DNA from: Macrostomum lignano
Taxonomy: Eukaryota
Assembly (NCBI GenBank): GCA_002269645.1
Contig: NIVC01002094.1
Location: 1 to 64,000 of the forward strand
Length of the DNA stretch: 64,000 nt
Reading direction: 5' to 3'
This document shows positions 31,466 to 64,000 of this stretch, piece by piece (position 1 is the first letter of the stretch; the number at the start of each line of letters is the position of its first letter). Under the pieces are notes generated by a model that saw nothing but the letters and a program-made list of their open reading frames with translations, made no database searches and was not told the DNA's origin. The translations under genes were made by a program, and so were the position numbers.

Positions 31466-31522
<57 letters not shown>

Positions 31523-35507: not shown

Positions 35508-35842
35508 TGTAGCTTAAAACCAACCACTGGGGCATGGGGAATGGGGGGTTTTAGGGTGGGGAGATTCTTCATGGGGATTGATTTTATCAACATAAACTTA
35601 AATAGAGGCATGGAGACCTATTCAAGATTGTGTTGATAAATTCCAATCCTAATAGGGGGGAGGAGGGGGGGTTGTAGCTTAAAACCAACGACTGGGACAT
35701 GGGGTCGGGGATTGGGGAAGGGGGGTTTAGGGTAAGGAGATTCTTCATGGGGATTGATTTTATCAACATAAACTTGAATAGAGGCATGGAGACCTATTCA
35801 AGATTCTGTTGATAAATTCCAATCCTAATAGGGGGGGGGGGG
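35508..35842. repeat. ~165-bp tandem duplication
   Basis: Two copies beginning tgtagcttaaaaccaac and ending in G runs. Confidence 0.85.
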
Positions 35843-36613
35843 TTGTCTGAATCAGACGACACAAGAAAAGAGTCAACATATTTCAGATTCAGAAGTTGGT
35901 TAAATTCTATAACTTAATCTATATGAATTTGCTTACCGAAATCAGGTGCTGTTATTGCCATAATACAATATAATTAGTAGTATAGCCTTGTACAGTAATT
36001 GGTTGAGAGGTGCGAAGTGCTTTGAAGTTGCGAACGTTGCTTTGGCTGGGTGCAGTGAAAGTGCAAGTGCACAGATCCCGAAAGCGGGTCGTGACGTGGC
36101 AATTTAAAAAAAGCGAACAGTGTCTATGCATTATAACTAAATTGAAAAACTATTATCATCGAACGTAAAAGACAATTGCATATTAATTTTTAGATATTAT
36201 TATTTATCTTTAATTGGCCCAATGAAGTTCTAGCCCATGTGCTATTATATTAAAAGTCTAGTGAATACACTTTCAAAAATGTATTCGTAGAAACTTTTGC
36301 TTACCGAACCTCATTAAGAGAATAGGGAATCGAGTAAATCGTGATTGTATCAACCGTACAGGTAACTTTCTACAGTTTTTTTGCATTTTTGAAATTTTTG
36401 GTGCCCCATAAGTGTCCACTGCAAGTTTCAGAAAAATCGGAAAATCAGAAGTATTTTATCAACATAAACTTGAAGTAGTCCACAAAATTTTCTTGTATAA
36501 ACACAATTTTTCTCTATTTCATTAAATCTTTAGATTTCTAATAGAAATTAAAATAAATATATAGATATTATTTTAGCAGTCTATGGATTTTGCCCTTTAG
36601 CAAACAAAAACTA

Positions 36614-36945
36614 TCTCTACATATAAAAATAAAAACTCTGTTTATGTGTCTGTCTGTATATATACAATTTTGATTGCTATGGAGTCCCAAACTACTCAGC
36701 CAAATTACACCAAATTTTCAACCCACACTAAATGCCCTACAGAGATTTTCTTAGGCCACCTTTAAATTTACTAAATTAGAATCTCTCTACCTAAAAGTGC
36801 AAAAATTGCTCAAAATATGCATTTTTTTCATTCAATCCTCCATAGTGCCACTCCAGTTTTACCAATCCTCTTCAATTTTCAATTTTCACAATTTTCAACT
36901 ATTTTGACACAATTGTGTAAAATTTCAAGTCTTGAAAATTTATCC
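36614..36945 (+). mobile_element. Dispersed Helitron-like family, copy 2 (5' part), followed by an AG-rich tract to ~37200
   Basis: A|TCTCTACATATAAAAATAAAAACTCTG start; colinear with 29558-29890. Confidence 0.6.
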
Positions 36946-38100
36946 TAAGAGGATAGAGGAAGAGGAGAGACAGAGGAGGGATGAGAGAAGCAATAAGAGA
37001 GGGTAGAGGTGAGAAGAGGGAGAGAAAAGAGAGATGAGATGACAGAAAAAAGTAGAGAAGAGTGAGAAGATAGTAGAGATGAGAGAGCAAAGAGATGAGA
37101 GGATCCAGGAGAGAGAGTAGGAAGGAGAGAGAAAAAAGAGATAAGAGGGATAGAAAAGAGTGAGAAGAGAGGAGATAAAGATGAGAGAGAGAGAGAGGAG
37201 GGCATCTCCAAACTCAGGCACTGACATGGTAGAAAGTTCAAAAGTTAGAAAGGACTGAAAAAAGTCAATTTTATTTGAGTTGCCAATATTTCAAAATTAT
37301 TATATTTCTTTGTCAGGGCAAGTGAAAAGTAGCGACCAGTGGCATTGTAAAGTTATTAAATAGGCAGAGTTAGAGGGGAAAGAGAATAGACAGGTAGATA
37401 GAGAGCATACAATATGTATACTTGGTGTGAATCAATAAAACACTATTAGACTTAAAATGCAAAATAATTGAATCAGTGCACAAATAAAGTGAACTGCATG
37501 TAGGCTGTATTGACCCTATATACAAAATAAATATTGGAGCAGTGCAACTGCACCAGTGTCTAAAAAGGGAAATAGTGATTCTAAGTACTTTAGAAAATGG
37601 ACCTCAATAAATAAATAAGCAGTAAATCAATAAATAAATATATAAGGTAAAAAAGCCCTCAAAAACTAAAAAAGAGCAATTGTACAATCATCAAAAGAGT
37701 AAAGAAAGTGTAATAAAAATGTACAGGGTGTCAAAAAACAATAGAAATGTAGATGCAGAATTAATGCTGAGAATATACAAAAGCTGACTATGGACTAGCA
37801 ATAAGAAGAAAAAATTCTAAGAAAGGAACAATAAAAGGCTAGATAGGTACCAGCATGGTTTGACAAAGCTAAGTAGTAGGGAAAGTAAAGTTAAAAATCA
37901 AAGGAAACAAATTCAATCAGTGGTGGACTCCAGTTGACTGGGACACAGCAGCTGCTAGAAGTTCTGCCTTTTGGTATAGGCGGGCAGCACCGGGGCCTCG
38001 CAGTGCCTAGCCACGCAGTCTTTCACTGCAGCTACGCATCCAACCTTGCACAATGAGGCAGGATCAGTGGGATGGCCGGGTTGTTTAGCATGCTAGCAAG

Positions 38101-39330
38101 CTCATTGACACCATGTGGAGCTTAAGTCTTTAACATTTCAATGAGCTTGGCCTTGTACTGTTGTTGCCACTTGTTTGCTCTGGGTCCTGTGCTATCATGT
38201 GACCAGATGCCGGTGAAGGCAAAGTCCACCAGAATGTGGCCATCACTGGTGAAATGGCAGGCCACCAGAATGTTATGGATGTGCCAGATATTGCCAATGT
38301 GCACCAGCATGTGGCCATGAATGCTGTTGGCAGTCTTGCCTACATAGAGTATGTGGTCGCACTGATGGCAGAACATGGTGTAAATGGCATTGGTGGCATT
38401 GCAGTCAATCCACTGACTAATGATGAGCTGGACTGTTGTGGCTGCTGAGCTGGGGCAGATAGAAGCAAACCTAGCGTGTGTCTGGCAGCACTTGCACAGC
38501 CAGGTTGGGTTGCACAGCAAAAAGCCAAATTCCCACTATCTCGTCAGGTAGAAGCCCAGCTCCATCAGCATCTTGTACTTATTGTGTGCAGGAACTGCCA
38601 ATTGTAGCCCTGGTGTTGCACCAAACTTGAAAACAGCCCGGTGCATGCTGCGTCAAAATCGGCTATCTAGGAACACCGCTGGGCGTATCTGAGGAGCTGG
38701 GACTTCACCACACCCTGGAAGGTTTGCTTCAAATGGAAAGAATTGTGGTGAATGAGCATTTGGCTGTTGGTCGGCTTGAAACACACCTTAGTTGCCAGGC
38801 GCTTAACATCGCCCTCGCGGTCCTAGAAGACGGTGGTATCCAGGAAGTTGACCTCTGTGCTGCTGTAGCACAGCTGCAACTTGATGTTCAGGTCAATGCC
38901 ATCCAGGAGCTTGTAGAAGTGGACCAGCTTGTCTCTCATTCCATGCCAGACGCCGAAGATGTCGTCAATGTAGTGCAGCCACAGGGCAGGCTTCTGCTGG
39001 CTGAGCTCCAGACCCCGCTGCTCCCAGTAGCCCATGTAGAGGTTGCTGTAGCTGGGTACAAATGATTTTCCCATGGCCATGCCTTTCACTTGCAGAAAAA
39101 ATTTGCCATCAAACTCGAAGTCATTGTGTTCTAGGTTCAGCTTAGGAGGCAGACTGAGGAGGCTTGTGTCCAGGCGCCAAGCATCCGGTTACTCCCTGAA
39201 GGCCCTCTGCATGCACCTAAGTCCGGCCATAGTCGGGATGTTAGTGTAAAGGCCAGCGACGTCCATGGTGAACAGGAAGGTCTCACCCGGTGCTGGGCAG
39301 GTGATGTCTCTGATGGCTGCCTTGAATGGG
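38101..39330 (-). mobile_element. Decayed Penelope-like retroelement (RT + GIY-YIG endonuclease)
   Basis: RT motifs: FTMDVAGLYTNIP, FEFDGKFFLQVKGMAMG..PSYSNLYMG, WLHYIDDIFGVW, VNFLDTTV. GIY-YIG motifs: CNATNAIYTMFCHQCDHILYVGKT and LKT*APHGVNE. Many stops and frameshifts. Confidence 0.9.
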
Positions 39331-39339
39331 ATGGAAAGG

Positions 39340-39355
39340 GGTGAGATAGGAGATT

Positions 39356-39419
<64 letters not shown>

Positions 39420-39835
39420 AGAAGGAGGAGGGAGAAAGGAGAGAGGAGAAAGGAAAGATGAGAGTAAAGGGAGGAGATGAGAGAAGAGATAAGATTGTAG
39501 AGATGAGAATGGTGAAGAGAGTCTAGAGATGAGTGATGAAGGAGTAGAGGAGAAATAAAATGAATCAGAAGAGGGGAAAGACATGAGAGAGGTGAGAGAA
39601 CAGAGGAGACGAGAGAAGAGAGGAAAGATGAGAGAGCAATAGAAAGAGAATAGAGAAGGAAGGAGAGGCGATAGAGGAGAGGGAGAGGAGGGATAAGAGA
39701 GGATAGAAGAGAGCAGAGAGTAGAGATAATTTAAAAAAGAGGAGGGATAGGAGAGAGAGAAGGCGAGATGATAGATAAGATAAGAAAACAAAGGCGAGAG
39801 AAGAGAAGTTTGATAAAATCAAAGAGACAGAGAAA
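39340..39835 (+). repeat. AG-rich low-complexity tract with a (GA)n core; the flank that follows (to ~40090) resembles the flank after the 30810-31980 tract
   Basis: Shared downstream sequence gggttcaaaatc...gtttcaacagcttgta at ~32250-32280 and ~40055-40090. Confidence 0.8.
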
Positions 39836-40875
39836 GGGGCAGAGGCCAGAGTTTGCCAACACATGCTTAGACAGATGTTTAGAGACTCATTTTGCATAGA
39901 AGCCCTGCTGATGATATCAATGCTTGCCTCAAGTTATAATTTAACACAAAATTACTCCATTTTTTAAACCTATGATAACTATTAATAAGTTTCTGTTAGA
40001 GCACAACTTCAAAAATTTGGAATTTTTGCAAAAATGGTTCTGGGATTGAAATTCTAGGGGTTCAAAATCTGCAGGTTTCAACAGCTTGTATAATTATAAT
40101 TGTAAAAAAATTCTTCAACACATGACAAAATGCATCTTGTTATTAAAATGGCAATTCATTGAATCTTGCATTTGTCCTAAAATGTATATTATCATTTAAA
40201 ACTACTTGTCACTAAAACAACGTATGTATTTATTTATATAATACATACATTCTATTAAGCACTTTTAATGTTTGCATTAATATGTAAATATTAATATGAG
40301 TTATTTTAATGAATGCTTATTCTAATTACCTAACAGTAGTATAACCAAATATTTGTTGAAATCTTGGCAAAAATTCACTTGGTCCCTTATTCTCCCTCTA
40401 ATTTTTTAGGTCTCCACCTAAGGGGGAAACTGCCACCTACCCCACTCCCTAGTTGCACCACTGTTACCCAACAATCTCCATATCTACATGTCTCATTAAG
40501 AATACTATAAATTTCTCTTTACTATTAATTTTGCTTTAGTCCTTATCAACTCTATTCACTATAGAACAAATATAAACAAAGGAAGCTATTATAAAACACT
40601 TGTATAAAATACTTGTTGTTGGGCCTTATCCCATTTTTACTTAGAAATTAGATGATAATAACTAATTTGGTTCTTTTCTTATTTCTTTTCAGCTTTTAGC
40701 ATTCAGTTTATTTAAATTATAGTTATAATCATTGATTATAACTGCCTTAAATGGCCAATCTACGTAGTAAATTCAAGTGAGAAATTGAATTCAAGTTCAA
40801 CTTCGTGTTCAATCTTAAAAAAACGTTTAAACGAGCAAAGGCCTGAGCACGACCACCTAAAAAACAACGCGGAAA

Positions 40876-41156
40876 ATGAGCGAAACGGATGGTGCTAATG
40901 CAGGTGCTACTGCAAGTACAACCGCCGACTCGAAGATTTTAGAATCCGCAGCAGCAGACGGTAAATTGGAAATGGTACAGGGCATTTTCGAATATATCAA
41001 AGAAGATAAAAGCGCGATCGAGATGTGTCTGAGAGCAGCGGAACGCGCTGGCCACAGAGGTCATCGGGGAGTGATGAATTTTTTGGTGGAGAAAGCTCAA
41101 GAGCTACGTCAGACGGATCATAGAGAAACAAATCCGGCTGGCCGCACTCGCTCGAG
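40876..41156 (+). CDS. Exon 1: ATG plus one or two degenerate ankyrin-like repeats
   Basis: AAADGKLEMVQ and AERAGH...VMNFLVEK resemble ANK helices; the ORF stop lies inside the donor AG|GTGAGT (phase 2). Confidence 0.55.
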
Positions 41157-44100
41157 GTGAGTCACTGCTTGAATATGAGGTGTAGCTGAAAGCAAAAAAT
41201 AATTTAAACTGTGAGTTTATTTAATGAACTTGAAGTTGTGAATTCCTTTGTGGTGACTGTGGCAGCATGCAAAAAACTGTATACAATATTTAGCATTGGT
41301 TTAAATTATTTTATTTTAGCGAAAAATTTTTCATCCATAAAAATATCATGTTACTGAAGTGCTTGTGGTTGTCAGATCGTTGAACGGGCAGTCTCTGGCT
41401 CCGGCCGCTGCCAACAATGTTATACAGGCTGCTCTCTTGGGATGACTCGGTAGATCTCCTGAGCCCTTGGCGGTGCCTTCTAGAGGGATCCGTTTCTTAG
41501 AAATTGTTTCTCATAGCGTTGGTAGTAGCTGCCACCAGCTTGCACGGATCTTCACCTTCGATGAAGGAGATTCCGAGCTAAGCAAAATAAACGAGACGCA
41601 GAAACTCAGCACACCGTGCAGATTTGACAGCTCGTGATGGTGCACACCTTGTCAGCAGGTCCTGCTGGTCTCAAGTGCGGGGATTAGGTACTGTGCTGCT
41701 ATCTCGTTAGCTTAGTTGCTATTATTTGCACAAACTCAGGGCCGTATGCAGAAAGCTCTGTCTAGGGTAGTCTGGTCTTGAAAAGCTAGTCTGGACCACA
41801 GATAGAATAGAATCTGTGGTCTGGACTTGGATTTGGTATGCAGAAACACAAAGTTAGACCGGGACTACCAAGGAATTGGGTCTACTATAGGCAGATTATG
41901 GTAGCTAGACCATAGACTACAGACTGAACTACCCAAGTCCGGACTAGCTAGTCTGGACCACAGATACTAAATACCATAGATGGTTCACTCGACTATATTT
42001 ATCAAAACTACTCTCTGTTCGGTAGTATGATCGTAAAAGGCTATATTTATTTACTCAACTGCATGTAGCCGTGAATAATTAGGCTAATAAAACATAGATT
42101 ATTGAAGTTGTCTACACAATCGTAAGTCAAACTCTAATGCTACATTGCTACTGGTATACTTAGTAATTATTTTTATTCATTTAGCAAGCAAGCAACATTT
42201 TTGTGCATTGCGAGTGAGAAAAAAGAACAAAACGGGGAAATATTTATAATACAGTGAAATTATAATTACCGTAGAATAAAAGGATGCGACTATAAAGTTC
42301 TTAAGTTTTACTAGTAGCATCGAGTAACGTATTATTTTTGGAGACAAATTGAGATTTTAGAAAAATTCGCCATAAAAGACGTAACACAACTGCTCTGAGG
42401 CTCTATATTGGTATTTTAGGTTTAATACCTAAATACTCTGGTGCAAGAATTGTTAACTTCCCTTACATAGAAAAATTTAATATCTATTATCTTTTTCTTT
42501 GTAATATTTGAGTTAGTTTTCCTTAAGTAATATCATCGCTCGTACAATAAAAGTCGGAAACTTTGCTTATTGCCTCAACTTGCATTCCATCAGACCCGAA
42601 GGCCCCCCGCTCCTGGAGCGCTGGGACGCCGTTCGCCTCATCGGCCGCGGTGGCTTCGCCGAAGTCCACGAAGTTCGAACTGACACGGGCGTCACGTGTG
42701 CTGCCAAGACTCTCAGACTGCCTGTGCAGCTCGGTGATGAGCTGCCCTCTGTGAGCACAGAGATCCACAGAGCTATCGAGAGCGAGAGAAACCTGTGCGG
42801 ACTGCGGCATCCCAACATCGTCAGGTTCCTGCACATCGCTCAGCCGGAGCCCGCCACAGTCGTTGTGTTCATGGAGCTGCTGGACGGCCGAAGCTTGGAG
42901 AGGTTTATCGACAACAAGCCGCTGGACGAGCTGACTATTCGAGACTTCAGCGAGCAGGTGAGCATTGTGCATCCTTGATGCTCCTGTTCCATGTTCCCAT
43001 GAATGATGACTGCTCACTGACCGACCGCTCGCAGATCTGCCGCGCGCTGCTCTACCTGCACAGCCGGCAGCCGCCCGTGATCCACAGAGACATCAACTGC
43101 TCGAACATAATTGTTTGTGCTGACAACACGCGAATCAAGCTGATCGACTTCGGCCTGTCAATCAAGCTGGAGCACTCAGTCAGCCACATGTCAGCCTCCA
43201 CTCAGGCACCCAAAGGCACTCTGAACTTCATGGCGCCGGAGCTGCTCGGAGCGGGAGAGTCGGACAGCGTGCAGTACAGCAGAGAGTCGGACATCTGGGC
43301 GTTCGGCTGCTCGGTCTTCCAGATGGCCTCCGGCGCGAGGCCCTTCAAGGGCAACCAAAGCGTCCATCAGGTCGCCTCGAAAATTGCAAACAGTGGCGCC
43401 CCAGCCCTGCCGGACGGCCGGTCCGCAGAGCTGAGGGATTTCTACAGCCGCTGCACCGCCAAGGACCGCAGGAAGAGAAAATCAGCACAGGAGCTGCTGG
43501 GGCACGAGTTCCTGACACAATCTACACAATCGTAAGTCAAACTCTAATGCTACATTGCTACTGGTATACTTAGTAATTATTTTTATTCATTTAGCAAGCA
43601 AGCAACATTTTTGTGCATTGCGAGTGAGAAAAAAGAACAAAACGGGGAAATATTTATAATACAGTGAAATTATAATTACCGTAGAATAAAAGGATGCGAC
43701 AGTATTCGGGCCTCCATCGGTGAGTCTGACCGGTTCGGCTTTCATTGCTGCATTGCGCCTTCCAACAGGCTGACAGCTTGGGGCAGAAATTGCAGCGAAA
43801 CTCAGCAGGGTTGAGCTTGGGTTGACTCTCAGCTCTCCTGCTTGAGGTGCCAGTCTGAGTGCTGCAGCAGCTGCGCTCTCAGCTTTCCATCCAACTTTGG
43901 GCAAATCACCCAAACGCATCTCGGATCATTCCAGGCTCTCAGACGACTCTCAGCAAGACAGGCACCTGAGCGAGGAGCTCCATCAACTGCTTAGCAAGGC
44001 GGGATTCACCGGGCAGAGAGCAAAGTGTCAGCAGAGACTGGCTGACTGGCTTGAAGGAGTCGCTCGAGACCTCACACAGGATGACAGGCAGATGACGGGC

Positions 44101-47100
44101 AGCTTCGCAGAGGGCTGGGGCAACAGTCTGGTGCAAGTGAACGGCAGGACAGCTGTAGACTCGGACATTGACTGGACTGTGCTGGTTGCTGGGCAGCAGT
44201 TCCATCTGGAAGGTGGCTGCGAAGGATCTAAGGACTCCTGCAGAGACGCCACTCAGCTGCAAGTCACGGAGGGCCATGCACAGGTGGCAGTGAGAGCAGG
44301 TGAGTGAGGCTGGGTTCATCATCAGAATGACATATTCTGTGGAATGCGCTGAAATCCGTCTATTTCCTACTTCTTTTTTAAATTCCTATCATCAAGCTAG
44401 TAATAGTAGTGCAAACCAAAGGCTTAATAGTGAGAAATAGTTTGCGAATTTTTTCGCTCTATTGTTTTTTCATATTCAAGCGAAACAATAAAAACCCACA
44501 TCTTTATAGACAGTGTTTTTATTATTTATTTTAATTTGTTTCCTATTTAAATACTTTTTCTGTTTTTAGTTCGTGTTAGGTACTAGACACTCAAATATTC
44601 GCTGAGAAGCCGGTAATTTTATATCCAGTGCTTTTAACTGGCCCTTAAGCGACTCAGAAGTAAAATTTATCCTATATAATCAAGAGAATATCAGCAGTTT
44701 GAAACCCATTCATCCACTCTGCAGGCAGCCAACCGGTAGTGACAGCCACGGCGTGCGGTGTGCGGCCTGCACAGGACACGTGTCATGCGATCGAGTGCTG
44801 CAGCAGTTTCTGTGAGGACAGAATCATAAAAACGTTTCCATTCAGTGGTCCTGTTCACCTCGTTCGGGCGACCAGACCGAGCTCGACCAACGAGCTCAGA
44901 GTGAGCTTCAGCTTCCAAGAGAAAGACATCATGAGACAGCTGAGCACAGTTCAGGGCCAGCTGTTCACACTCATCAAGTTTATCTTCAAGAGACACTTGC
45001 CGCTCACTCTGGACACACCTGGACTCAAGACCTACCATGCAAAGACTCTGCTCTTTAGAATGCTAAAGAAGCATGGCACAAATCCTAAACTTGAGGCTTG
45101 GCAGCCCCACAATCTGATCGCTCTGCTCAAGGAGTCTCTCGACATGATGCTGAGCTTCATCGACTCGAGCAGCTCGCCCGATGAGTGCATGCCGCACTTC
45201 TTCATGCCAGACGCTCCGCTCTACTTCAAGAACGCTGGAATCGGCGGCGACTTCGACAACACGAAGGCGAGGGTTCGAGATCGACTTCTTGAGCTGAGAA
45301 GCGACATCGGCGGAGTGGCGGAGCAGCTGAGGAGACACGTGAGACCTCTGCAGTCAGAGAAGTTCTACTTTCACCCGTTCACTCTGCTGCCTCTGACAGC
45401 GCCGCCTGCTGTCACGGAGATCAGGAAACAAAGTGAATATCCAGAATTTTATTACAATTTCGCAGACGTGTACAGTGTAGTGCATCAGTGTGTGAGCGAG
45501 CTGCAGTCGGAATCGAGCAACAAAGACACCCTGATGAGGCAGCTCAGTCTCCTGCATAAGCTGCAGTGGTGCAAGTGCGCCGCCCTGTGCATGACCGCCA
45601 TGGCGCATTTGAAGTTCGGAGAACCTGAGAAGGCTGAGAGACTCGCGATGGAGCTGCAGAGACATCAGGTTGAGTCAGGGTTGAAGCCACAGGATATCCG
45701 AGACGAGAGTAAATGGCTACGAAATAAGATAAAACTGCCTGCAGACTCAGACTGGGCGTGGAGGTTCTGCCTCCCCTGCGACTCTCCGCCTCGCTTCCCA
45801 TTCCTTCCCGAGTTCACGCAGACTCTGTTCACAGCCAGACTGTCGCAGCCTCTCTCCTCCCACCTGTACGTGAACTTCCGCTGCCTGAGCTGGAGTCTCC
45901 AAGCTGAGCTGCTCCGCAATCGCGAACTTGAAATTAAACTGGAGGATTGGAAGCGAGAGCTGAAAGAAGACCCGGACTTGGAGGAGCTGCTCACTCTGGC
46001 TCACTACAGCGACTGCCGCGAGCACGTGGAGCTCAGCCTGCAGCAGATGGAGATGATCGAGAAAGAGAGACGCGTAGCCATGGAGACGCAGGACGAGGAG
46101 AACATCGGCTGGCTCAGGCAGAAGCTGGAGAGACTTAATGATGCAGAAGTTAGAGTAGCCAAAACACAAGCTGACGTCAATCTTCAACGAAACTCTGGCG
46201 AGTCACCTCTCTACATTGCATCTGAGCAGGAGATCCTGGAAGCCGTTATGTTCGAAAATGAAGCAAAAATTTCACGATACCTGCAGACGCCTTCTAACGT
46301 TGATAGGCTCCTCAGCATCAATGAGATTACTTTCTCACCGCTTCACTTTGCGTGTGAAATTGGAAAAGAAAAAATTGTCGAAATGTTCGCTCGAGCACAA
46401 GCTGACGTCAATCTTCAAGAAGTCCATGGCTGCTCACCTCTCTTCATTGCATCAGAGTGTGGTCACCACCAAGTTGTGAGCTCACTCATCAAAGCACAAG
46501 CTGACGTCAATCTTCAACGAAACGATGGCTGCTCACCTCTCTACATTGCATCAGGGTGTGGTCACCACCAAGTTGTGAGCTCACTCATCAAAGCACAAGC
46601 TGACGTCAATCTTCAACGAAACGATGGCTGCTCACCTCTCTACATTGCATCAGAGTGTGGTCACCACCAAGTCGTGAGCTCACTCATCAAAGCACAAGCT
46701 GACGTCAATCTTCAACGAAACGATGGCTGCTCACCTCTCTACATTGCATCAGGGTGTGGTCACCACCAAGTTGTGAGCTCACTCATCAAAGCACAAGCTG
46801 ACGTCAATCTTCAAGAAGTCGATGGCTGCTCACCTCTCTACATTGCATCAGGGAAGGGTCACCACCAAGTTGTGAGCTCACTCATCAAAGCACAAGCTGA
46901 CGTCAATCTTCAAGAAGTCGATGGCTGCTCACCTCTCTACATTGCATCAGGGAAGGGTCACCACCAAGTTGTGAGCTCACTCATCATAGCACAAGCTGAC
47001 GTCAATCTTCAAGAAGTCCATGGCTGCTCACCTCTCTTCATTGCATCAGAGTGTGGTCACCACCAAGTTGTGAGCTCACTCATCAAAGCACAAGCTGACG

Positions 47101-50100
47101 TCAATCTTCAACGAAACGATGGCTGCTCACCTCTCTACATTGCATCAGGGTGTGGTCACCACCAAGTTGTGAGCTCACTCATCAAAGCACAAGCTGACGT
47201 CAATCTTCAACGAAACGATGGCTGCTCACCTCTCTACATTGCATCAGAGTGTGGTCACCACCAAGTCGTGAGCTCACTCATCAAAGCACAAGCTGACGTC
47301 AATCTTCAAGAAGTCGATGGCTGCTCACCTCTCTTCATTGCGTCAGGGTGTGGTCACCACCAAGTCGTGAGCTCACTCATCAAAGCACAAGCTGACGTCA
47401 ATCTTCAACGAAACGATGGCTGCTCACCTCTCTACATTGCATCAGGGTGTGGTCACCACCAAGTTGTGAGCTCACTCATCAAAGCACAAGCTGACGTCAA
47501 TCTTCAAGAAGTCGATGGCTGCTCACCTCTCTACATTGCATCAGGGAAGGGTCACCACCAAGTTGTGAGCTCACTCATCAAAGCACAAGCTGACGTCAAT
47601 CTTCAACGAAACGATGGCTGCTCACCTCTCTACATTGCATCAGAGTGTGGTCACCACCAAGTTGTGAGCTCACTCATCAAAGCACAAGCTGACGTCAATC
47701 TTCAACGAAACGATGGCTGCTCACCTCTCTACATTGCATCAGGGTGTGGTCACCACCAAGTTGTGAGCTCACTCATCAAAGCACAAGCTGACGTCAATCT
47801 TCAACGAAACGATGGCTGCTCACCTCTCTACATTGCATCAGGGAAGGGTCACCACCAAGTTGTGAGCTCACTCATCAAAGCACAAGCTAACGTCAATCTT
47901 CAACGAAACGATGGCTGCTCACCTCTCTTCATTGCATCATGGAATGGTCACCACCAAGTTGTGAGCTCACTCATCAAGGCAAAAGCTGACGTCAATCTTC
48001 AACGAAACGATGGCTGCTCACCTCTCTACATTGCATCACAGAGGGGTCAACACCAAGTTGTGAGCACACTAATCAAAGCACAAGCTGATGCGATTGGTGT
48101 ACATATTGATAGTCAAGAATTGGCTAAAAGTACATTCGCTGTGAAAGAGCCACCAAAACTGTTAGATTTTGGGTAAGATTCATTTTTTATTTTTTGTTCT
48201 AAATAACTTTTTCGAGTAGTTTTTTACGGGTCCGATGAAGATAAGGTAATTGTCCAAGCAAGCGGTCGTGAGAGGCAGTATTGGCAGTTGGAACCGCATG
48301 CAAACAGTGGAAAGCGAGAGCTTGCTGAATTCTGAGTCAAGATGGATTTAACATGGCTGATATCACAGGCTAGTGTATCTGCTCACAGGGTTTATCCGTG
48401 ACTCAGAAGTAAATGCAATGTGAATGTGGAGTTCAGGGCCCCATCTGCCGTCATCCCCATAATTGGCATCGTCAGCAAATCAGGTTTCTTTTTTATTTAC
48501 TCGGACCGCTCAGATCCGTTCGGCCAATAAAGTTGCCTCGTAAACATGCCACTCTACAGACACTCTACCGGACAGTAACGAAAATTGGACCATTTTTCAG
48601 AAACAAACCATGCACATATCTTCTCTGGACACTGGGCTCACCCTATGGACTCACCACCGGCCTGACTCACCCCACCTCCAGCATTCCCCACCCCACCTCC
48701 TGCCTCCTTCACTCCACACACAGGTCTCTGAATCTAAAGTATCAAATCCTCATCACTGAATTAACTCTTTTCCCACCTGCCAACCATATCACAGACACTC
48801 TGCTTGGACACTGTATGGGCAGTCATGGAAATTGCACACATTTTCTGTAAACTAAACTAAACTAAACTAAAGAACTAATTAAAGGATCAACTGCCTGCAA
48901 AATGATCAGCAAAATCAATTCATGCACTGTTCGGGAGAGCTTCCCTGTGCTACACAAATCAGTCAATTAACCCATGTAGGCCTGCAAGTTTTTCACCTAT
49001 AACTCACATTTTAGATGCAGTCCCAGCGACTCAGAGCTGAGCCATCAGCTGCACTCAGCACTGGAGCAGTCAGGCTTCACCGAATCCCGAGCCGCATTGC
49101 AGAGCGCAGCTGCCGATGTCCTGCAGCAGATTCTAAGAAGTCGACTGAACTACGATAACTTTTTTGTCATTGGCAGCTACTCAGAAGGCTGGGGAAACAG
49201 CCTGACGACACTGGATGGCAGAACTGACTCCAATTCCGACATTGATGTGATGTGTTTGATTCCCGGTCGAGAATACCACCAGAGAGGCCTGTGCGAGTGC
49301 GATGGCGCTCCGGAGCAGCACGAGTTTGTGAACGGGCACATTCAGTGCTCAGGATTCGGTGAGCTCTCTCTTGGGAGTGAGATGGTGTTAGTTCTGTTAG
49401 TGATTTCTTCTGGTAGTGCAGGCATTCCCGTTTTGTGTCCCACCTGGGTAAAGTATTACTGGGAAACTCATGGCATTGTGCGTAGCTACGAGCTCGCATA
49501 AAATCGCTAAAAATATCTACGACCCAAACAAGAACCTGACTGTTTTCTTTCAGTCTGGATTGATTTGGTACATATGCATGAGCATTTAAAAATTTATTGA
49601 ACCTGCGGGGTTCTGTGATAGGTAGCTAGCTATACCCACAGAATGGTAGTCCCGTTTTGGAAACTTGCATTTATTATATGTACCTCAGTATTTTATATAC
49701 GCTTATAGTATAGGTAACAATATTCGACTTTTCTTCTTTCACAATTAGTCCAAAACATCACTGCACAGACTCAATGCTGTATATTGCCCAATCGGGAACC
49801 GAATCGTTTTTACAGCCTCCAACCCTGCTGATGCGACAGACGGATGCACACTGAGGCCAGCACTGGACAATGTCTCCGCATGCCGTCTCTGCCGCTACCC
49901 GCCCATCGCGCCGCTGCTACCAAACCGCGTCTCGAACATCCCTCATTCGGTGCTGGAGGCTCTCCGGAAGGTTCTCACCTCCGCCTCATCGCCCTGCCAC
50001 GTGGTGCACGCAGCCTCTCCTGACCGAGGGGGCGAAGAGCTCCGCGTGAGCACCAGCTTCCTGGAGAACCGGATGCTGCGAAGTCTCTCTACCCTGCAAG

Positions 50101-51269
50101 GCCAACTGTTCGTCACACTCAAATACCTGGTCAAGAAGGTCATTTGTCACAAGAATGGCTTCAATCAGCAAGGCTTGAAGTCCTACCACGTGAAGACCAT
50201 CACCTTCCGAATGGTGGACGAGACGCCGGTCGAGCAGTGGAAGACGGAGAACCTCGTGAGTCTCACGAGACAGACGCTGCAGATGCTGCTCGACTGTGTG
50301 GAGAAGAGCCGAGAGCAGGACAGACAAACACCTGACACACCTGACCGATCTCGGGGTCGCATCATGAAGCATTTCTTTCTCAGCGATGCGGCCATCTACC
50401 TCAAGGGTGCGGACAAGGAGAGAGCGGACCAGCATTTGGACGGCATCATGAGCACACTGAGAACAGTAATCGATCGGCTGCCTCAACTGCTGCAGCAGTT
50501 CATCGGCAGTCTCAGACCTGTGAGCGACTCAGGCACATTCTACTTCCATCCGTTCCTAATCCTGCCGGATCTGAGGCCGAAACCACTCACGAAGTCCAGT
50601 GCTCTCGAGTATTATCAGATCTACGACGTGGTGAGAGAGTGTCTGGTGCGTCTCTCGCACAGTGACTGCAGCCAGCGATCTCAGGAGTCGCTCACAGAGC
50701 TGATTTCCAGACTGCCAGACTGCGTCCTCTCAGCACGGGAGGCTCTCAGAGTGCTGGCTTGCCTGAAGTTCGGCTACCGAGGAACTGCAGAGAGAATCGT
50801 GAGCTTCTGCTCAGGTCACTCGGTGAGCAGAGGTATCGCTTGGTCTCGTGAGAAGTCGGCGACTGAAGCGACTGTGGAGTTCGTGATGCGGGATCTGAGC
50901 AGCCGCGACTCAGCGTGGAAGTTTTGCTTTAAGTTCGACCAGCGACCGAAACTCGAGTTCTTGTCAGGAGCTCTGAGGGAGTGCTTTCCCCTCCGGTTGT
51001 CAAGCATAGATGACCATTTCTACATGAACTTTGATGCTCTGCTGTGGGCTCTGCGGCTCGAGCTGCGGACTGATGGAGAAGCGCGCGCTCAGGACTGGAT
51101 CCGAGATGTGGCTAAGAGAGAGGACTCGGATGAGCAGGAGCTGCTGGTTGCCGCTTTTTATTCTTCGAATCCAGAGCAGCTTCAGGAAATGATGAATAAG
51201 CTGAAGATGATGGGAGCATATTCTCTTGATTGGCTGAAGGCGGGAATTCAGGAAAAATGGTGCTTTTAA
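40876..51269 (+). CDS. Predicted 7-exon gene (~2250 aa): ANK-like / Ser-Thr kinase / Mab-21-cGAS-like NTase / 17 ANK repeats / second Mab-21-cGAS-like NTase
   Basis: Exons 40876-41156, 42594-42957, 43035-43531, 43935-44299, 44725-48172, 49015-49358 and 49816-51269 have GT-AG introns with matching phases (2,0,2,1,2,1). They total 6753 nt, an open frame of 2250 aa plus stop. The join is inferred, not shown by transcripts. Confidence 0.65.
42111..42290 (+). repeat. 180-bp direct repeat, copy 1 (copy 2 at 43521-43700), flanking the kinase exons
   Basis: tctacacaatcgtaagtcaaactc...aggatgcgac matches at both sites, offset 1410 bp. Confidence 0.95.
42594..43531 (+). CDS. Protein kinase domain (STE11/MAP3K-like), exons 42594-42957 and 43035-43531
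   Basis: Motifs GRGGFAEV, CAAK, IESE (helix C), [20 protein letters not shown] and SDIWAFGC. The 77-nt intron is GTGAGC...CAG. The exon ends TC|GTAAGT (phase 2). Confidence 0.95.
43935..46140 (+). CDS. Mab-21/cGAS-like nucleotidyltransferase module 1 (exon 43935-44299 plus the 5' part of exon 44725-48172)
   Basis: GSFAEGWG...SDID metal-binding motif, third acid in RPAQD, then LRVSFSFQEK, GLKTYHAKTLLF and MPHFFMPD, which match the Mab-21 C-terminal helical motifs. Confidence 0.9.
46395..48077 (+). CDS. Array of 17 near-identical 99-bp (33-aa) ankyrin repeats within exon 5
   Basis: Consensus AQADVNLQ(RND/EVD/EVH)GCSPL(Y/F)IAS(GC/EC/GK)GHHQVVSSLIK; 17 x 99 = 1683 bp exactly. Confidence 0.97.
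49015..51269 (+). CDS. Mab-21/cGAS-like nucleotidyltransferase module 2 (exons 49015-49358 and 49816-51269)
   Basis: GSYSEGWG...SDID, RPALD, LRVSTSFLEN, GLKSYHVKTITF and MKHFFLSD. There is no in-frame ATG ahead of the motif. The phase-2 acceptor is TTTTAG|49015 (or CAG|49021). Confidence 0.9.
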
Positions 51270-52362: not shown

Positions 52363-54043
52363 GTGTGTGATTGGGGAATCTGCAGATCGACGGCTTTGGT
52401 GTGTGATTGGGCAACCTGAAAGATGTGTGATTGGGGAATCTGAAGGCTGTTGTGTGTGATTGGGGAATCTGAAGGCTGTGGTGTGCGATTGAGGAATCTG
52501 AAAGCTGTTGTGTGTGATTGGGGAATCTGAAGGCTGTTGTGTGTGATTGGGGAATCTGAAGGCTGTTGTGTGTGATTTGGGAATCTGAAGGCTGTTGTGT
52601 GTGATTTGGGAATCTGAAGGCTGTTGTGTGTGATTTGGGAATCTGAAGGCTGTTGTGTGTGATTGGGGAATCTGAAGGCTGTTGTGTGTGATTTGGGAAT
52701 CTGAAGGCTGTTGTGTGTGATTGGGGAATCTGAAGGCTGTTGTGTGTGATTTGGGAATCTGAAGGCTGTTGTGTGTGATTTGGGAATCTGAAGGCTGTTG
52801 TGTGTGATTGGGGAATCTGAAGGATGTTGTGTGTGATTTGGGAATCTGAAGGCTGTTGTGTGTGATTGGGGAATCTGAAGGCTGTTGTGTGTGATTTGGG
52901 AATCTGAAGGCTGTGGTGTGTGATTTGGGAATCTGAAGGCTGTGGTGTGTGATTTGGGAATCTGAAGGCTGTTGTGTGTGATTGGGGAATCTGAAGGCTG
53001 TTGTGTGTGATTTGGGAATCTGAAGGCTGTGGTGTGTGATTTGGGAATCTGAAGGCTGTTGTGTGTGATTTGGGAATCTGAAGGCTGTGGTGTGTGATTT
53101 GGGAATCTGAAGGCTGTTGTGTGTGATTTGGGAATCTGAAGGCTGTGGTGTGTGATTTGGGAATCTGAAGGCTGTGGTGTGTGATTTGGGAATCTGAAGG
53201 CTGTTGTGTGTGATTTGGGAATCTGAAGGCTGTGGTGTGTGATTTGGGAATCTGAAGGCTGTTGTGTGTGATTTGGGAATCTGAAGGCTGTGGTGTGTGA
53301 TTTGGGAATCTGAAGGCTGTTGTGTGTGATTTGGGAATCTGAAGGCTGTTGTGTGTGATTTGGGAATCTGAAGGCTGTTGTGTGTGATTTGGGAATCTGA
53401 AGGCTGTGGTGTGTGATTTGGGAATCTGAAGGCTGTTGTGTGTGATTTGGGAATCTGAAGGCTGTGGTGTGTGATTTGGGAATCTGAAGGCTGTGGTGTG
53501 TGATTTGGGAATCTGAAGGCTGTGGTGTGTGATTTGGGAATCTGAAGGCTGTTGTGTGTGATTTGGGAATCTGAAGGCTGTGGTGTGTGATTTGGGAATC
53601 TGAAGGCTGTGGTGTGTGATTTGGGAATCTGAAGGCTGTTGTGTGTGATTTGGGAATCTGAAGGCTGTGGTGTGTGATTTGGGAATCTGAAGGCTGTGGT
53701 GTGTGATTTGGGAATCTGAAGGCTGTGGTGTGTGATTTGGGAATCTGAAGGCTGTTGTGTGTGATTTGGGAATCTGAAGGCTGTGGTGTGTGATTTGGGA
53801 ATCTGAAGGCTGTGGTGTGTGATTTGGGAATCTGAAGGCTGTTGTGTGTGATTTGGGAATCTGAAGGCTGTGGTGTGTGATTTGGGAATCTGAAGGCTGT
53901 GGTGTGTGATTTGGGAATCTGAAGGCTGTGGTGTGTGATTTGGGAATCTGAAGGCTGTTGTGTGTGATTTGGGAATCTGAAGGCTGTGGTGTGTGATTTG
54001 GGAATCTGAAGGCTGTGGTGTGTGATTGGGGAATCTGAAGGCT
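52363..54043. repeat. 29-bp minisatellite (tgtgtgatttgggaatctgaaggctgt[t/g]g), ~58 copies
   Basis: Homogeneous tandem units with no spacers; the 638-aa minus-strand ORF is a 3 x 29-bp artefact. Confidence 0.97.
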
Positions 54044-55160
54044 CTTATTTGTGTGGCGTACATGTATAATGCTGAAAATTCAAATAAATGGTTATTATTA
54101 CTTTGTACATTCATCTCAACCCAGTTGTTTTGCAGCACAAAAACATACGAGCGTACTATGGAAGGTTGGCTTACTTGGTTATAATAATCCCGCAATCAGG
54201 ACGTTTGTTTAAAGTTGTTTTTGTTTAAACTAGAGATCTATTCAGCAAGCACAAAAGGACGAACAAATGGACCGAACAGCCAACGAGTAGCTATAGTTGG
54301 TGTCAATGCTTTATAACGTGCCAAGAGCCAAGAGAAAATATTTTAAAATCGGATTACAGCTAAGGAAACTGCTAATGCATCCCAATTTCTTTATTTGAAC
54401 AATTTTCTTCTTAATTTAATTCTGAGAATGTAGGACAAAGTATTCAATTTATAAACGATAGAGTAACGATTAGAATAAAAACTAGGGTAGCTACTCACCC
54501 CTGAGGAGCAAAGGTTAAAATTTCACTGAGCCACTGAGTACAAAGACCACGTGATCAAATAGGAATATAAGATAGCAAACGCAAGGAAGGACGAAGGCAC
54601 AACCTCACTACTCTCCCAGAGAAAAACACGGGGAGAAAACAACGGGATAAAAGATGAAGCTTTCGACAACGCAGAGAATGCAGCGCCTGCCTTACTTGGT
54701 AACTGGCAGGAGGACACTTGATGTCACAGGAGGGCCTTTGCAGCACCAGCTCAGCCCAAGCTCACTTAAGGATCCCAATCCTTAATAATAATAAGGAAGG
54801 TGCAGTTGGAGATCCTTGCCCTGAAGATACATGACCTGCAGACATTGCTGGGAATAACAACAGTCGTTGATGTTGATGTTTAAAAAGTCATCCGGAATTA
54901 TATTTGAACTGAATGCTTCAATCATATTTAAATAAGTAGGCACCGTTAGGTAGGGCTTTGGCCTTGAATGGACTAAATAGTTTCACTCGTCCAATAAAGC
55001 GATTTATGACTTTTTTCATTTAAAGGAATTACCAAAGGCTAAAATATTTTTCCCCAGGAATCGGTTGCACCAGCGACCTTTTCCCCCAGGCAGTCAACAA
55101 GCAATCGCAGTTAAATCTTCATTTCCATCGATCGCATTGAGGGTTGGAATTGTGTCATTA

Positions 55161-56500
55161 CCACTAGGCACCACTAGGCTTGAAGACCATCGAGGCATCT
55201 GCCTTCAGTCCTGTGCAGCGAAACTGTTCAACCGGATGCTGCTTCCGCGGTTGCAGCCCGTGCTGGATCCGTACCTGCGCCCAGAGCAGAACGGGTTCCG
55301 GCCCCATCGCGGCACAGTGGCACAGATCCTGGCTCTTCGCCGAGTCATCGAGGAGGCGCGGATTCGCCAGTCGATCCTGATTCTAATCTTTATTGATTTC
55401 AAGAAGGCATTCGACTCGGTTGTCAGAGCCGTGCTTCCAATGGTGCTCCGCGCGTACAACGTGCCTGAGCAGCTGATCTCCGCCATCATGGCGATGTACC
55501 GTGATACGACAGCTGCTGTGACAACACCGGACGGCCTATCGGACTCCTTTGAGACATCCTCCGGAGTGCTTCAGGGAGATACGCTGGCGCCGTTCCTGTT
55601 CGTCCTGGTGCTTGACTGGTTGCTGCGGACTGCTCTTCCTACCGACGACGACGGCTTTCTGCTGCGGCGACGCGTGGGTCGACGTCAACCGGAGAAGCGG
55701 CTCAGCGTGCTTGGCTACGCCGACGACCTCGCCTGCTATCCTCGACCGTCGATGGCGCCCAACGGCAGCTGGACAGGCTAGTTGCCGTTGCGGCGAGCGT
55801 CGGCCTGGTGGTCAACACGCAGAAGGCCGTTGTGCTCTGCGTGCCGGACGACATCGAGGCTGCAATCTTCTGCCGAGGCGCTGACGGGCAGGCGACCGCG
55901 ATGTCAGCAGTTCGTCTACCTCGACGGTCTGGTTCCAGACGCTCGCGAGGACCTGCGACGCCGCCGCGGGCTTGCCTGGGCTGCCTTTCGTTCTGTGAGG
56001 GCGGTCCTGCAGTCCGAGGCCCGACCGGACCGCCAGAGGGCGGCGCTGTTCCAGGCGGTAATCGAGACCGTCCTGCTCTACAACGCCGAGACCTGGACGC
56101 TGACGGACTCACTCGAACTGCAAGTCGATGCGGCGCACGCTGGCCTGCTGCGCGCCGCCTTCAACATCGGCGTCGAGCGAGTCAACAACGCGGCACTCTA
56201 TCGCCGCGCTGGCCTGCCACGTCCAAGCGATCTGCTGCGAGTCGGCGACTCCAGCTCGCAGGCCATCTCATCCACGCCGAGTCGTACTGCCCACAGCCGG
56301 TGCAGGAGGTGCTGCTGCTCACGCTGCAGGCACCCTACCGGCGAGGTCAAGCGCGAACTCGGCGTTACGTCGACTGTCTGCTGGCTGACGCCGGCGCCCC
56401 GGACACTGCCGGTGGCGCGGCCTTTGTTCGCGCCCAAGCCATGAAGCGCGCCCTGTGACGCTGACTTTTGCCACCCTGACAGCGTATTTTGTTGTTGTTG
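55161..56500 (+). mobile_element. 5'-truncated RTE-type non-LTR retrotransposon, frameshifted RT
   Basis: RT motifs EQNGFRPHRG, FIDFKKAFDSV, GVLQGDTLAPFLF and YADDL. It ends in a (GTT)n tail at ~56490-56500. An 11-bp TSD TTGTGTCATTA lies at 55150-55160 and 56501-56511. Confidence 0.93.
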
Positions 56501-61644: not shown

Positions 61645-62787
61645 ATGGCAACACAGATGGAGCGGAAGCTGAGAGCGGCGCTGGAGGCTGGAGACAGCGA
61701 GGAGCTGCAGCGACTGTGCGGTGAGGTCGGCAGCAACATCGAGCTGGAGGTGGGCGGGTTCGACACGCAAGACTTTCCCTTAGAAGAGCTTCGCATGCCG
61801 CTGGCCCATCACGTGGCCTGCAAGCCGGTGAGCTCGTCGTGCCTGGAGCTGCTGATTAACAGATTCGGACTCGACTGTCTGACACATGGAAATGATAGGG
61901 GCGAGACTCCAGTGGACTTGGCTGCCCAGCATCAGGACGAATCTTGGATGGAGCTGGTTAAAGAAAAGGGAGGCAGAGGCTGCTTGAGAATTGTCGATGG
62001 ATGGAGACAGTCAGTCGCTCACTTTGCCGCTATGAACAGAAAAAGCAACTCTTGTCTAAGGTGGCTGGTGAAGGAGCTCGGCAGCGACTGTCTCACAGCT
62101 CCTGACAAACTCGGTGACATGGCCGTCCATTTTGCCGCTAAGCATCAGGGCATCGAGTCACTGGAGTGGATCAAGAGACAGATCGGAACTGACTACTTTC
62201 GGCAGAAGGGGGGGGTTCTGGAAGAGAACAGCATTTCACTTTGCTGCTCAGAAGTCTGACAATTCAAATCTGAAGTGGCTGGTGAGGGAGCTCGGCAGCG
62301 ACTGTCTCACAGTTCCTGACAAACACGGTGACACGGCCGTCCATTTGGCCGCTCAGCATCAGGGCACCGAGTCGCTGGAGTGGATCAAGAATCAGATCGG
62401 AACTGACTGCTTTCGGCAGAAGGAAAAGCGGAAAAGAACAGCATTTCACTTTGCTGCTGAGAAGTCTGACAATTCAAATCTGAAGTGGCTGGTGAAGGAG
62501 CTCGGCAGCGACTGTCTCACAGTTCCTGACAAATACGGAAACATGGCCGTCCATTTAGCCGCTCAACATCAACCAGTCGACTCTCTTCAGTTCATTTTTG
62601 ACCAAATTGCAGCCGAAATGTTCAGCTTGAAGAACAACAGGGGCGAAACACCGACTGATGTTGTTGAGAGTAATCGGTGCCGCACAGACCAGTCAGCAAA
62701 GCGGGCCTGGATTTCCTCCACGCAGCCGCAGCTCGAAGCCTCTAGGCCTCCCGCTGGCAGCTCAGCGCCGACTGCCGCCTCAGCTGG
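61645..62787 (+). CDS. Ankyrin-repeat exon (~8 long, alternating repeats) of a second ANK-kinase gene; +1 frameshift in the G8 run at 62208-62215
   Basis: Motifs GETPVDLAA, AHFAA, AVHFAA, AFHFAA and AVHLAA. Removing one G joins the two ORFs. The exon ends GG|GTGAGT (phase 2). Confidence 0.85.
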
Positions 62788-63372
62788 GTGAGTCCTGACT
62801 GAGAACTGCTGCCTCAGCTGGGTGAGTCCTGACTGAGAGCTGCTGCCTGACACTTAAAATACTGAAAATATTGTTTGGCGAAAATTCATTGCACCTTGAT
62901 GATCGGCGCCCTGAAATTCTCAGCAGCGCCGCAGTCAAGCGAAGGCGTCATGAATCTGTCACTGCAGCTCCTCATGGGACCCCGAACCCCCACCCAAAGC
63001 TCAATCTGCAGGAATTTTTTAGCACAAAGCATCAGCGAGTTTAAGTGCCATCAAACTCTCCGATTTTAGTAGAAATGTACTTAATGTGACGTTCCAAATA
63101 TTGTCACTTAAATGACTTCAGAGCCTCCAATCTCTTCGTGGGACCGCAATCTCCCGATTGCGTCTCTAATGTCCATATAGCGCCACCCAAAGCTCAATCT
63201 GCAGTGCAGCTTCTTATTTACCACAGGGTGTGTACATGTACAAGATTTACTTCGACAAGCCTCTTGTACTGGCGTGAGTTCATTCAGCTCACACTGCTAA
63301 AGCACACAGCTACAGCACACACAGCTAGAGCATGCAAATCATCCCTAATTGCCTCAATTCGCATCCCATCAG

Positions 63373-64000
63373 ACCCGAAGGCCCCCCGCTCCTGGAGCGC
63401 TGGGACGCCGTTCGTCTCATCGGCCGCGGAGCCTTCGGCGAAGTCCACGAAGTTCGAACTGACACGGGCGTCACGTGTGCTGCCAAGACTCTCAGACTGC
63501 CTGTGCAGCTCGGTGATGAGCTGCCCTCTGTGAGCACAGAGATCCACAGAGCTATCGAGAGCGAGAGAAACCTGTGCCGACTGCGGCATCCCAACGTCGT
63601 CAGGTTCTTGCACATCGCTCAGCCGGAGCCCGCCACAGTCGTTGTATTCATGGAGCTGCTGGACGGCCGAAGCTTGGAGAGGTTTATCGACAACAAGCCG
63701 CTGGACGAGCTGACGATTCGAGACTTCAGCGAGCAGGTGAGCATTGTGCATCCTTGATGCTCCTGTTCCATGTTCCCATGAATGATGACTGCTCACTGAC
63801 CGACCGCTCGCAGATCTGCCGCGCGCTGCTCTACCTGCACAGCCGGCAGCCGCCCGTGATCCACAGAGACATCAACTGCTCGAACATAATTGTTTGTGCT
63901 GACAACACGCGAATCAAGCTGATCGACTTCGGCCTGTCAATCAAGCTGGAGCAGTCCGTCAGCCACATGTCAGCCTCCACTCAGGCACCTAAAGGCACTC
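63373..64000 (+). CDS. Kinase exons of the second ANK-kinase gene (63373-63736, 63814 to past the window edge); recent duplicate of 42594-43220
   Basis: Nearly identical to copy 1, including the 77-nt intron; motifs [16 protein letters not shown] and DFG. The phase-2 acceptor CATCAG| matches the donor at 62787. Confidence 0.93.

Follow-up and report, generated by a model that had tools for sequence, protein, structure and literature searches.

The window considered here is the first 64,000 nucleotides (nt) of contig NIVC01002094.1 of the free-living flatworm Macrostomum lignano (assembly GCA_002269645.1), and our subject is a locus on its forward strand at 40876-51269. We think it probable that this locus is a young mosaic member of a Macrostomum-specific expansion of cGAS-like receptors (cGLRs), in which two divergent nucleotidyltransferase (NTase) modules, here called Mab21A (module 1) and Mab21B (module 2), are hard-wired to one another through an array of ankyrin repeats (ANK) in the order Mab21A-ANK-Mab21B.

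The tandem reading frame and its modules

The exon and intron analysis covers the interval 40876-51269 and treats its genes as spliced, eukaryotic ones. A first-pass annotation, made from the sequence alone, had described five open reading frames (ORFs) that splice through GT-AG introns into one frame of 6753 nt. When the exon joining was recomputed, that frame (2250 codons with one terminal stop) and the GT-AG borders of every intron were reproduced, but the exons number seven, the introns at 42958-43034 and at 44300-44724 / 49359-49815 lying inside what had been counted as five ORFs (Table 1). Intron positions are shared with annotated paralogues in four of six cases, and the three introns at module boundaries (after exon 1, after the kinase and after the ANK array) all have the same phase.

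We regard the hard-wired cGLR-ANK-cGLR frame as well supported at the level of predicted gene structure, because Mab21A passes into the ankyrin repeats inside one exon (a single ORF of 1145 codons), the intron between ANK and Mab21B is conserved in the B-type genes throughout the family, the first exon of module 2 has no in-frame ATG ahead of its catalytic core, and the introns within the modules coincide with those of paralogues P0036 and P0001. Other A-type paralogues stop or splice shortly after 'KLERL' ('...METQDEEKIGWVRQKLERL'). P0001 is the closest annotated paralogue of module 2, and its model, which is marked 'partial', begins at the equivalent acceptor; this confirms that module 2 is without a start of its own and confirms only that. 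At the P0001 locus there was no ORF of at least 100 amino acids (aa) in the 10 kb upstream, and no conserved multi-module layout was seen. A protein search centred on the Mab21A-ANK junction gave four matches, none of which spans the join. The same junction, 'KLERLNDAEVRVAKTQADVNL', is present in P0012, a database model with the order ANK-Mab21A-(one ANK)-Mab21B, and with the continuous frame this shared join would place two NTase modules in one predicted polypeptide.

The first-pass annotation had assigned both modules to the cGAS/Mab-21 fold, and that assignment, with catalytic-type motifs intact, is supported by predicted structures and by conservation. The AlphaFold models are confident, with a predicted local distance difference test (pLDDT) of 85.6 for module 1 and 87.7 for module 2 (predicted template modelling score, pTM, 0.89), and for both modules the best Foldseek matches in the PDB were cGAS, the oyster protein Cv-cGLR1, MAB21L1, MB21D2 and MiD51 (probability 1.0, E=1e-7 to 1e-5, target TM 0.5-0.6), the top match of module 1 being cGAS at E=1e-7. 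In Pfam searches the Mab-21_C domain (PF20266; cut-off 24.1 bits) passed in module 2, at 25.8 bits, and fell just short in module 1, at 23.7. A family profile built from the two modules and eight paralogues matches cGAS sequences of the PDB at E=1.8e-6 and reaches proteins carrying PF03281 and PF20266 at about 1e-16, one of them from the clam Mercenaria mercenaria.

The GS..EG, SDID and third-Asp (RPAxD) motifs reported in the first-pass annotation are indeed found in both modules, and the residues concerned are invariant in the family alignments: G55-S56, D77-I-D79 and D139 in module 1, and G53-S54, D75-I-D77 and D132 in module 2. In the models the G-S pair follows strand 1, D-I-D opens strand 2 and the third Asp is carried by a later strand, a predicted placement that agrees with the NTase fold. 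The GS-xx-EG...SD-x-D pattern also occurs in bivalve cGLRs of the table of Li et al. (2023). With only 32% identity between them, the two modules would represent two subfamilies, A and B.

The ANK array that joins them consists, as first annotated, of 17 units (a 99-nt unit repeated 17.1 times in tandem, at 95% identity). The 17 near-identical units occupy 46392-48088 and are preceded by some two to three degenerate ANK repeats (46152-46391); many Ank matches were returned by Pfam for the spliced protein. With the N-terminal ANK of the B-type protein P0006 the array shares 55% identity, and the sequence from 46128 onward includes homology to the B-type N-terminal cap, minus its first ~30 residues. 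Identical blocks of 300 nt at 46394 and 46988 define a higher-order repeat of 594 nt. Within the unit of 33 residues, amino-acid differences cluster at positions 10-12, 18 and 22-23; synonymous variation is limited to four sites among the 17 units, and the differences are almost all non-synonymous. In ankyrin repeats and designed ankyrin repeat proteins (DARPins) these same positions form the hairpin tip and the start of helix 2, the usual binding surface. Because the differences sit at canonical binding positions, the array probably contributes to binding, although unequal crossing-over that reshuffled a few kinds of unit could also account for the variation.

Table 1. Features of the locus and of its neighbouring paralogue (positions in the window)
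Feature	Position	Strand	Basis or remark
Exon 1: start ATG, 93 codons + 2 nt, short helical N-terminus	40876..41156	+	spliced model
Repeat A, copy 1, inside intron 1	42111..42290	+	180-nt direct repeat; homology to the P0060 locus ends in its first 10 nt
Kinase exon a: GxGxxG, VAIK-type Lys	42594..42957	+	Pkinase; acceptor also used in paralogue P0069
Kinase exon b	43035..43531	+	if unspliced, ORF stops at TAA 43533-43535
Repeat A, copy 2	43521..43700	+	100% identical to copy 1
Possible alternative first exon: in-frame ATG + 17-nt A-type mini-exon remnant	43694..43719	+	donor GTGAGT 43720; ORF test
Mab21A (cGLR module 1) exon 1: spine helix, GS56, D77-x-D79	43935..44299	+	P0036 borders, motifs, AlphaFold model
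Mab21A exon 2, part: D139, Mab-21_C lobe, C-terminal helical domain to '...QKLERL'	44725..46127	+	L004 homology, Pfam, Foldseek
Mab21A exon continued: B-type ANK repeats, then linker	46128..48172	+	no stop or intron at join
Mab21B (cGLR module 2) exon 1: GS54, D75-x-D77	49015..49358	+	ANK-linker-Mab21B join as in P0002, P0006, P0008
Mab21B exon 2: D132, Mab-21_C lobe, C-terminal helical domain, stop codon	49816..51269	+	Pfam, AlphaFold model, Foldseek, L001
Neighbouring paralogous ANK-kinase gene, running off window end	61645..64000	+	kinase homology

Probable mosaic origin and the proposed link between kinase and Mab21A

Upstream of the tandem frame lie exon 1 and a protein kinase. The kinase seen in the first-pass annotation is certainly there (Pkinase, E=1.5e-49 in the spliced protein), with the motifs GRGGFAEV, CAAK (the VAIK-type Lys), HRD, DFG and APE, and its nearest solved structures are ASK1/MAP3K5, WNK1/3 and MAP3K2. 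Its catalytic loop (43078-43101) reads HRDINCSN, the Lys of HRDxK (HRDIK in ASK1) being replaced by an Asn that is also conserved in the M. lignano paralogues P0036 and P0069; by its sequence the kinase appears MAP3K/ASK1-like, and catalytic activity cannot be assumed. An N-terminal ANK domain ahead of the kinase, also annotated initially, was not borne out, as exon 1 has no significant Ank match (the best, Ank_KRIT1, has E=0.029 and 14.5 bits against a cut-off of 80). What exon 1 does resemble is the N-terminus of P0060, to which its protein is 93% identical and in which it is followed by two kinases. The likeness to RNase L that had been drawn is unsupported because Pfam finds no KEN/RNase domain anywhere in the spliced model; we rejected the analogy, there being in addition no significant ANK before the kinase, and the kinase, with its HRD, DFG and APE, being ASK1/MAP3K-like rather than a pseudokinase of the RNase L type.

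Comparison with four paralogous loci, L001 (P0001), L002 (an ANK-kinase gene), L003 (P0060) and L004 (P0036), brings out the composite structure of the region. The stretch 34481-42120, which takes in DNA upstream of the gene, exon 1 and the greater part of intron 1, is ~98% identical to, and collinear with, L003, and this homology breaks off at 'GTCTACACAAT', in the first of two copies of a perfect direct repeat, repeat A. Because the first 10 nt of repeat A are L003-like intron, the second copy derives from the first junction. Between the copies lie a 275-nt stretch, U (42291-42565), and then a kinase cassette (42566-43515); neither repeat A nor stretch U has a match in L001-L004 or in the rest of the window. 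The end of repeat A lies 10 nt past an AATAAA, in the manner of a 3' untranslated region. The cassette is 93% identical to L002, and its alignable part, 42566-43221, matches at 97.6% identity the kinase exons (63345-64000) of the ANK-kinase gene at the end of the same window, which is likely, from this similarity, to be the source or the conversion partner of the cassette. The ANK ORF of that neighbouring gene has a frameshift in a run of eight G (~62211-62218), which is either a pseudogenising change or a homopolymer error.

Kinase homology ends at ~43515, at the place where stand-alone kinases have 'RKNL-stop', and copy 2 of repeat A begins after another five bases. From copy 2 come the final 11 nt of the kinase exon, the donor proposed for it, TC|GTAAGT (43532), whose GTAAGT contains the in-frame stop TAA 43533-43535, and the AATAAA at 43685-43690. 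From 43704 to 46127 the locus is 83-89% identical in nucleotide sequence to the A-type gene of L004; this homology begins in the last 17 nt of an A-type mini-exon, retains the native donor GTGAGT at 43720 and ends after 'KLERL', and the acceptor and donor of exon 43935-44299 are the P0036 exon borders in L004. The in-frame ATG at 43694 arose where repeat A meets the mini-exon remnant. The C-terminal helical domain of Mab21A is family-specific. Finally, 48652-51263 is 87-93% identical to L001 (93% over Mab21B exon 2). These borders are consistent with recent segmental rearrangements that would have joined four pieces from four paralogous genes. An 'ex1-kinase-kinase' gene would have supplied its promoter together with exon 1 and intron 1, and the neighbouring ANK-kinase gene would have been the template for a MAP3K-like kinase cassette; the third piece would be the body of an A-type cGLR minus its native N-terminal ANK exons, and the fourth a 5'-truncated B-type ANK-cGLR gene, fused in frame.

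How, then, is the kinase connected to Mab21A? This putative link is the weak point of the gene model, and at least three models are valid as ORFs: the full protein of 2250 aa; a protein of 1963 aa in which exon 1 is spliced straight to 43935 and the kinase is skipped; and a pair of products, an ex1-kinase of 381 aa and a protein of 1878 aa that starts at ATG 43694 and uses the donor at 43720. Judged from the DNA, the full, kinase-skipping and two-gene models are equally open. The single 2250-aa protein of the first-pass annotation (ex1-kinase-Mab21A-ANK-Mab21B, joined by a 43531 to 43935 splice and acting as a self-contained sensor and synthase with a kinase output) therefore stands as an open frame and as one candidate among these, and we consider it doubtful. 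All of its junctions are GT-AG and phase-compatible, leaving 6753 nt open, its donor fits the M. lignano motif GT[G/A]AG, and at 43934 it would use the acceptor native to the Mab21A exon; moreover, Mab21A would be without a native start unless an upstream coding exon provided one, and kinase and Mab21A do share a polypeptide in paralogues P0036 and P0221. However, the donor falls exactly on a rearrangement breakpoint, in a repeat of 180 nt that was copied out of intron 1; a stop codon overlaps it, and an AATAAA lies downstream; the 43531/43935 junction was found in no paralogue, the order kinase-then-Mab21A in no homologue found, and the rule in the family is a stand-alone ANK-kinase protein that ends directly after its kinase. 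The other possibility at this junction, either two transcription units, perhaps in an operon (ex1-kinase of 381 aa and a tandem cGLR of 1878 aa), or the skipping of the kinase, we find quite conceivable though short of probable. Every ORF that it involves is valid, the A-type remnant retains its native donor, an AATAAA lies 150 nt past the kinase stop with repeat A ending 10 nt after the hexamer, and the ~234-nt gap to the acceptor TTCCAG would fit the trans-splice motif and the operon spacing of M. lignano, in which ~30% of genes are trans-spliced to a spliced leader (SL), at the motif [T/C]TNCAG, and 15% are in operons with short spacers. Against two units, ATG 43694 was born at a junction, and no promoter or acceptor of its own was identified. 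SL trans-splicing onto 43935 or 49015 as a source of independent proteins was considered and rejected, as the terminal ATG of the SL is out of frame at both, and the AATAAA was set aside as evidence of a terminator, since with 133 copies in the window it is too frequent to discriminate.

It is also conceivable, though in our view unlikely, that the whole arrangement is non-functional, either a recently shuffled and decaying duplicate or an assembler's chimera from a highly duplicated genome. The 180-nt repeat is 100% identical at two breakpoints, the neighbouring paralogue is frameshifted in its G8 run, several multi-module models in the databases resemble merged neighbouring genes (P0155, for example), and the M. 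lignano genome, according to a published account (PMC10468722), is a hidden polyploid with many near-identical copies. On the other hand, 2250 codons drawn from four sources contain no stops or frameshifts, the catalytic-type residues are all kept, and an assembler chimera would be expected to leave one copy of the repeat per junction rather than the observed layout of repeat A, stretch U, kinase cassette and repeat A. Also, the Mab21A-'NDAEVRVAKTQADVNL'-ANK junction recurs in the independent model P0012, where the Mab21B part behind it has 97% identity to module 2.

The young mosaic cGLR with a hard-wired Mab21A-ANK-Mab21B remains the reading that we prefer, and several observations must be weighed against it. 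Measured against the nearest paralogues available, Mab21A has a ratio of nonsynonymous to synonymous substitution rates (dN/dS) of 0.72 and Mab21B one of 0.78 (dS 0.07-0.12), from which constraint appears weak, and the intact ORFs may in part reflect the youth of the locus; these same values favour a decaying duplicate. The perfect 180-nt repeats at two junctions could mark an assembly join. The catalytic residues were assigned by motif conservation and by the secondary structure of the models. Pfam did not directly detect the Mab-21 NTase domain PF03281 in the spliced protein, so that the check by hidden Markov models proposed with the first-pass annotation recovered Pkinase, Ank and the Mab-21_C of module 2, but not PF03281, and left module 1 just below threshold. 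Lastly, the five M. lignano cGLRs cloned for a biochemical screen (Li et al., 2023, Table S3) are not among the active enzymes named in the main text of that study.

The family in M. lignano and the surroundings of the locus

The family to which both modules belong is one of cGLRs, already catalogued, lineage-specific and heavily expanded. Among 1.84 billion representatives, the family profile found 1160 proteins at E<=0.001, and 94 representatives (clustered at 50% identity) fell below 1e-30, of which those looked up were all from M. lignano, as are all of the close homologues. Parts of the window match contigs of GCA_002269645.1 at 98% identity, which likewise points to M. lignano or a very close relative. 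A protein of 347 aa (P0030) from a 1065-bp contig in a metagenome-assembled genome of a Kangiellaceae bacterium is 41% identical to module 2 and is most likely eukaryotic contamination of that assembly. The five proteins in the screen of Li et al. (2023) are PAA68676.1, PAA93208.1, PAA86972.1, PAA45980.1 and PAA57558.1, and the first of these (BOX15_Mlig016402g1, P0043) is 83% identical to a 978-aa query containing module 1.

The paralogues combine a limited set of parts in several ways. B-type proteins have the architecture ANK-Mab21B (P0006 and P0008 both begin with Met), A-type proteins have an N-terminal ANK followed by Mab21A, and a separate large group consists of ANK-kinase proteins of ~700 aa that end right after the kinase (P0068-P0074, among them P0069). 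P0036 is an ANK-Mab21A-kinase protein in which the junction of Mab21A and kinase lies within one continuous exon of 597 codons, and P0221 has a similar join. Other fusions annotated in the same Mab21 family are to a caspase (P0183, 2111 aa, PAA93319.1) and to WSC and RING domains (P0163), and some of these may be merged gene models. The 'double Mab21' protein P0155 was not used as support, since the sequence at its join resembles an N-terminus ('MRFLEWLL...') and it looks like two merged neighbours.

That the architecture as a whole was novel, as first proposed, proved to be overstated: the family, ANK-cGLRs and multi-cGLR fusions are published, and P0036 and P0221 combine Mab21 with a kinase. 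In the survey of Li et al. (2023), 87% of cGLRs have a single domain, and there are members with TPR or ANK repeats as well as multi-cGLR fusions; the portion of its domain table that we examined includes no kinase or caspase domain names. Literature searches on Macrostomum and cGAS, and on cGLR-kinase fusions, found nothing specific.

As for the surroundings of the locus, a 29-nt satellite (55.9 copies, 97% identity) occupies 52424-54043 and is also found upstream of the P0036 gene in L004 (1564-3276), and 57008-58710 is 93-96% identical to DNA downstream of that same gene. Reverse-transcriptase ORFs of a retroelement (RVT_1, E=2.6e-21) lie at 55065-56458 on the forward strand, and an ORF on the same strand at 58612-59064 with a fibrinogen C-terminal domain (Fibrinogen_C, E=2e-28) is probably an exon of a gene for a fibrinogen-related protein. 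At 2400-8300, 13400-13950, 30770-32140 and 39189-39900 there are long pseudo-ORFs rich in Ser, Leu and Pro on skewed low-complexity repeats, with a GC skew as low as -0.5 or as high as +0.54; these regions are repeats rather than genes.

Proposed function and comparison with known systems

If the locus works as cGAS, cGLRs and OAS2/3 do, a bound ligand would activate one NTase module or both, with a nucleotide second messenger as the product; contact with the ligand would probably involve the surface of the ANK array, the C-terminal helical domain peculiar to the family, or the two together. Does the kinase have a part in such a response? Because paralogues fuse this type of kinase to Mab21A inside one exon, their sequences suggest that kinase and cGLR cooperate in the M. 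lignano family. Similarly, the recurrence of fusions, to a kinase in P0036, P0221 and possibly the locus studied here and to a caspase in P0183, suggests that caspase and kinase act in the same pathway as this type of cGLR. That the full protein of 2250 aa is made, with the MAP3K-like kinase as a built-in output or regulator and the hypervariable ANK array as ligand sensor, we consider improbable; the kinase coupling is the least documented aspect of the locus, and the five-module receptor is one of several open models. If it were nevertheless true, a cGLR would signal via a covalently attached kinase instead of, or besides, a diffusible nucleotide and STING, and the M. lignano fusions of cGLRs with kinase and caspase would be evidence that the pathway is wired in this way.

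The wider interest of the locus lies in the Macrostomum cGLR set itself, which is very large and fast-evolving and has been recombined with ankyrin arrays, MAP3K-like kinases, a caspase and RING. If expressed, loci of this kind would show exon-scale shuffling building new innate-immune receptor architectures, and, as natural 'Rosetta-stone' fusions, they would indicate which partners orphan cGLRs have. If, instead, the locus is merely a young rearrangement that is not expressed, it would be an ordinary by-product of a highly duplicated genome.

How does the locus compare with systems that are already known? The resemblance to RNase L (ANK-pseudokinase-KEN RNase) is a loose one, of ankyrin repeats and a kinase fold in the context of innate immunity, and the ANK array of the locus follows Mab21A rather than preceding the kinase. 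In OAS2/3 some NTase domains are catalytically dead, whereas both modules of the locus keep their catalytic motifs and stand ~19 ANK repeats apart. What they have in common with OAS2/OAS3, and with the multi-cGLR fusions of Li et al. (2023), is the presence of tandem NTase-fold modules in one chain. The ANK-cGLR of the coral Stylophora pistillata in the same study likewise combines a cGLR core with ankyrin repeats presumed to bind a ligand or partner, but it comes from another phylum and has no close sequence relation, and the M. lignano array, in contrast to it, is very recent, with near-identical units of 99 nt.

Among the closest systems are BOX15_Mlig008650g1 (P0036, 1185 aa) and the UniProt fragment P0221, which share with the locus an A-type Mab21 (81% identical) and a MAP3K-like kinase (60% identical); their order is ANK-Mab21A-kinase, with the kinase at the C-terminus, and they have neither a second Mab21 nor an ANK array. 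The M. lignano cGLRs in the screen of Li et al. (2023) have the same GS-x-x-EG...SD-I-D...RPAxD motifs, Mab-21_C lobe and long C-terminal helical extension. However, they have a single NTase, usually with an N-terminal ANK, whereas the locus described here has two divergent modules joined by a 17-unit ANK array and, maybe, a kinase.

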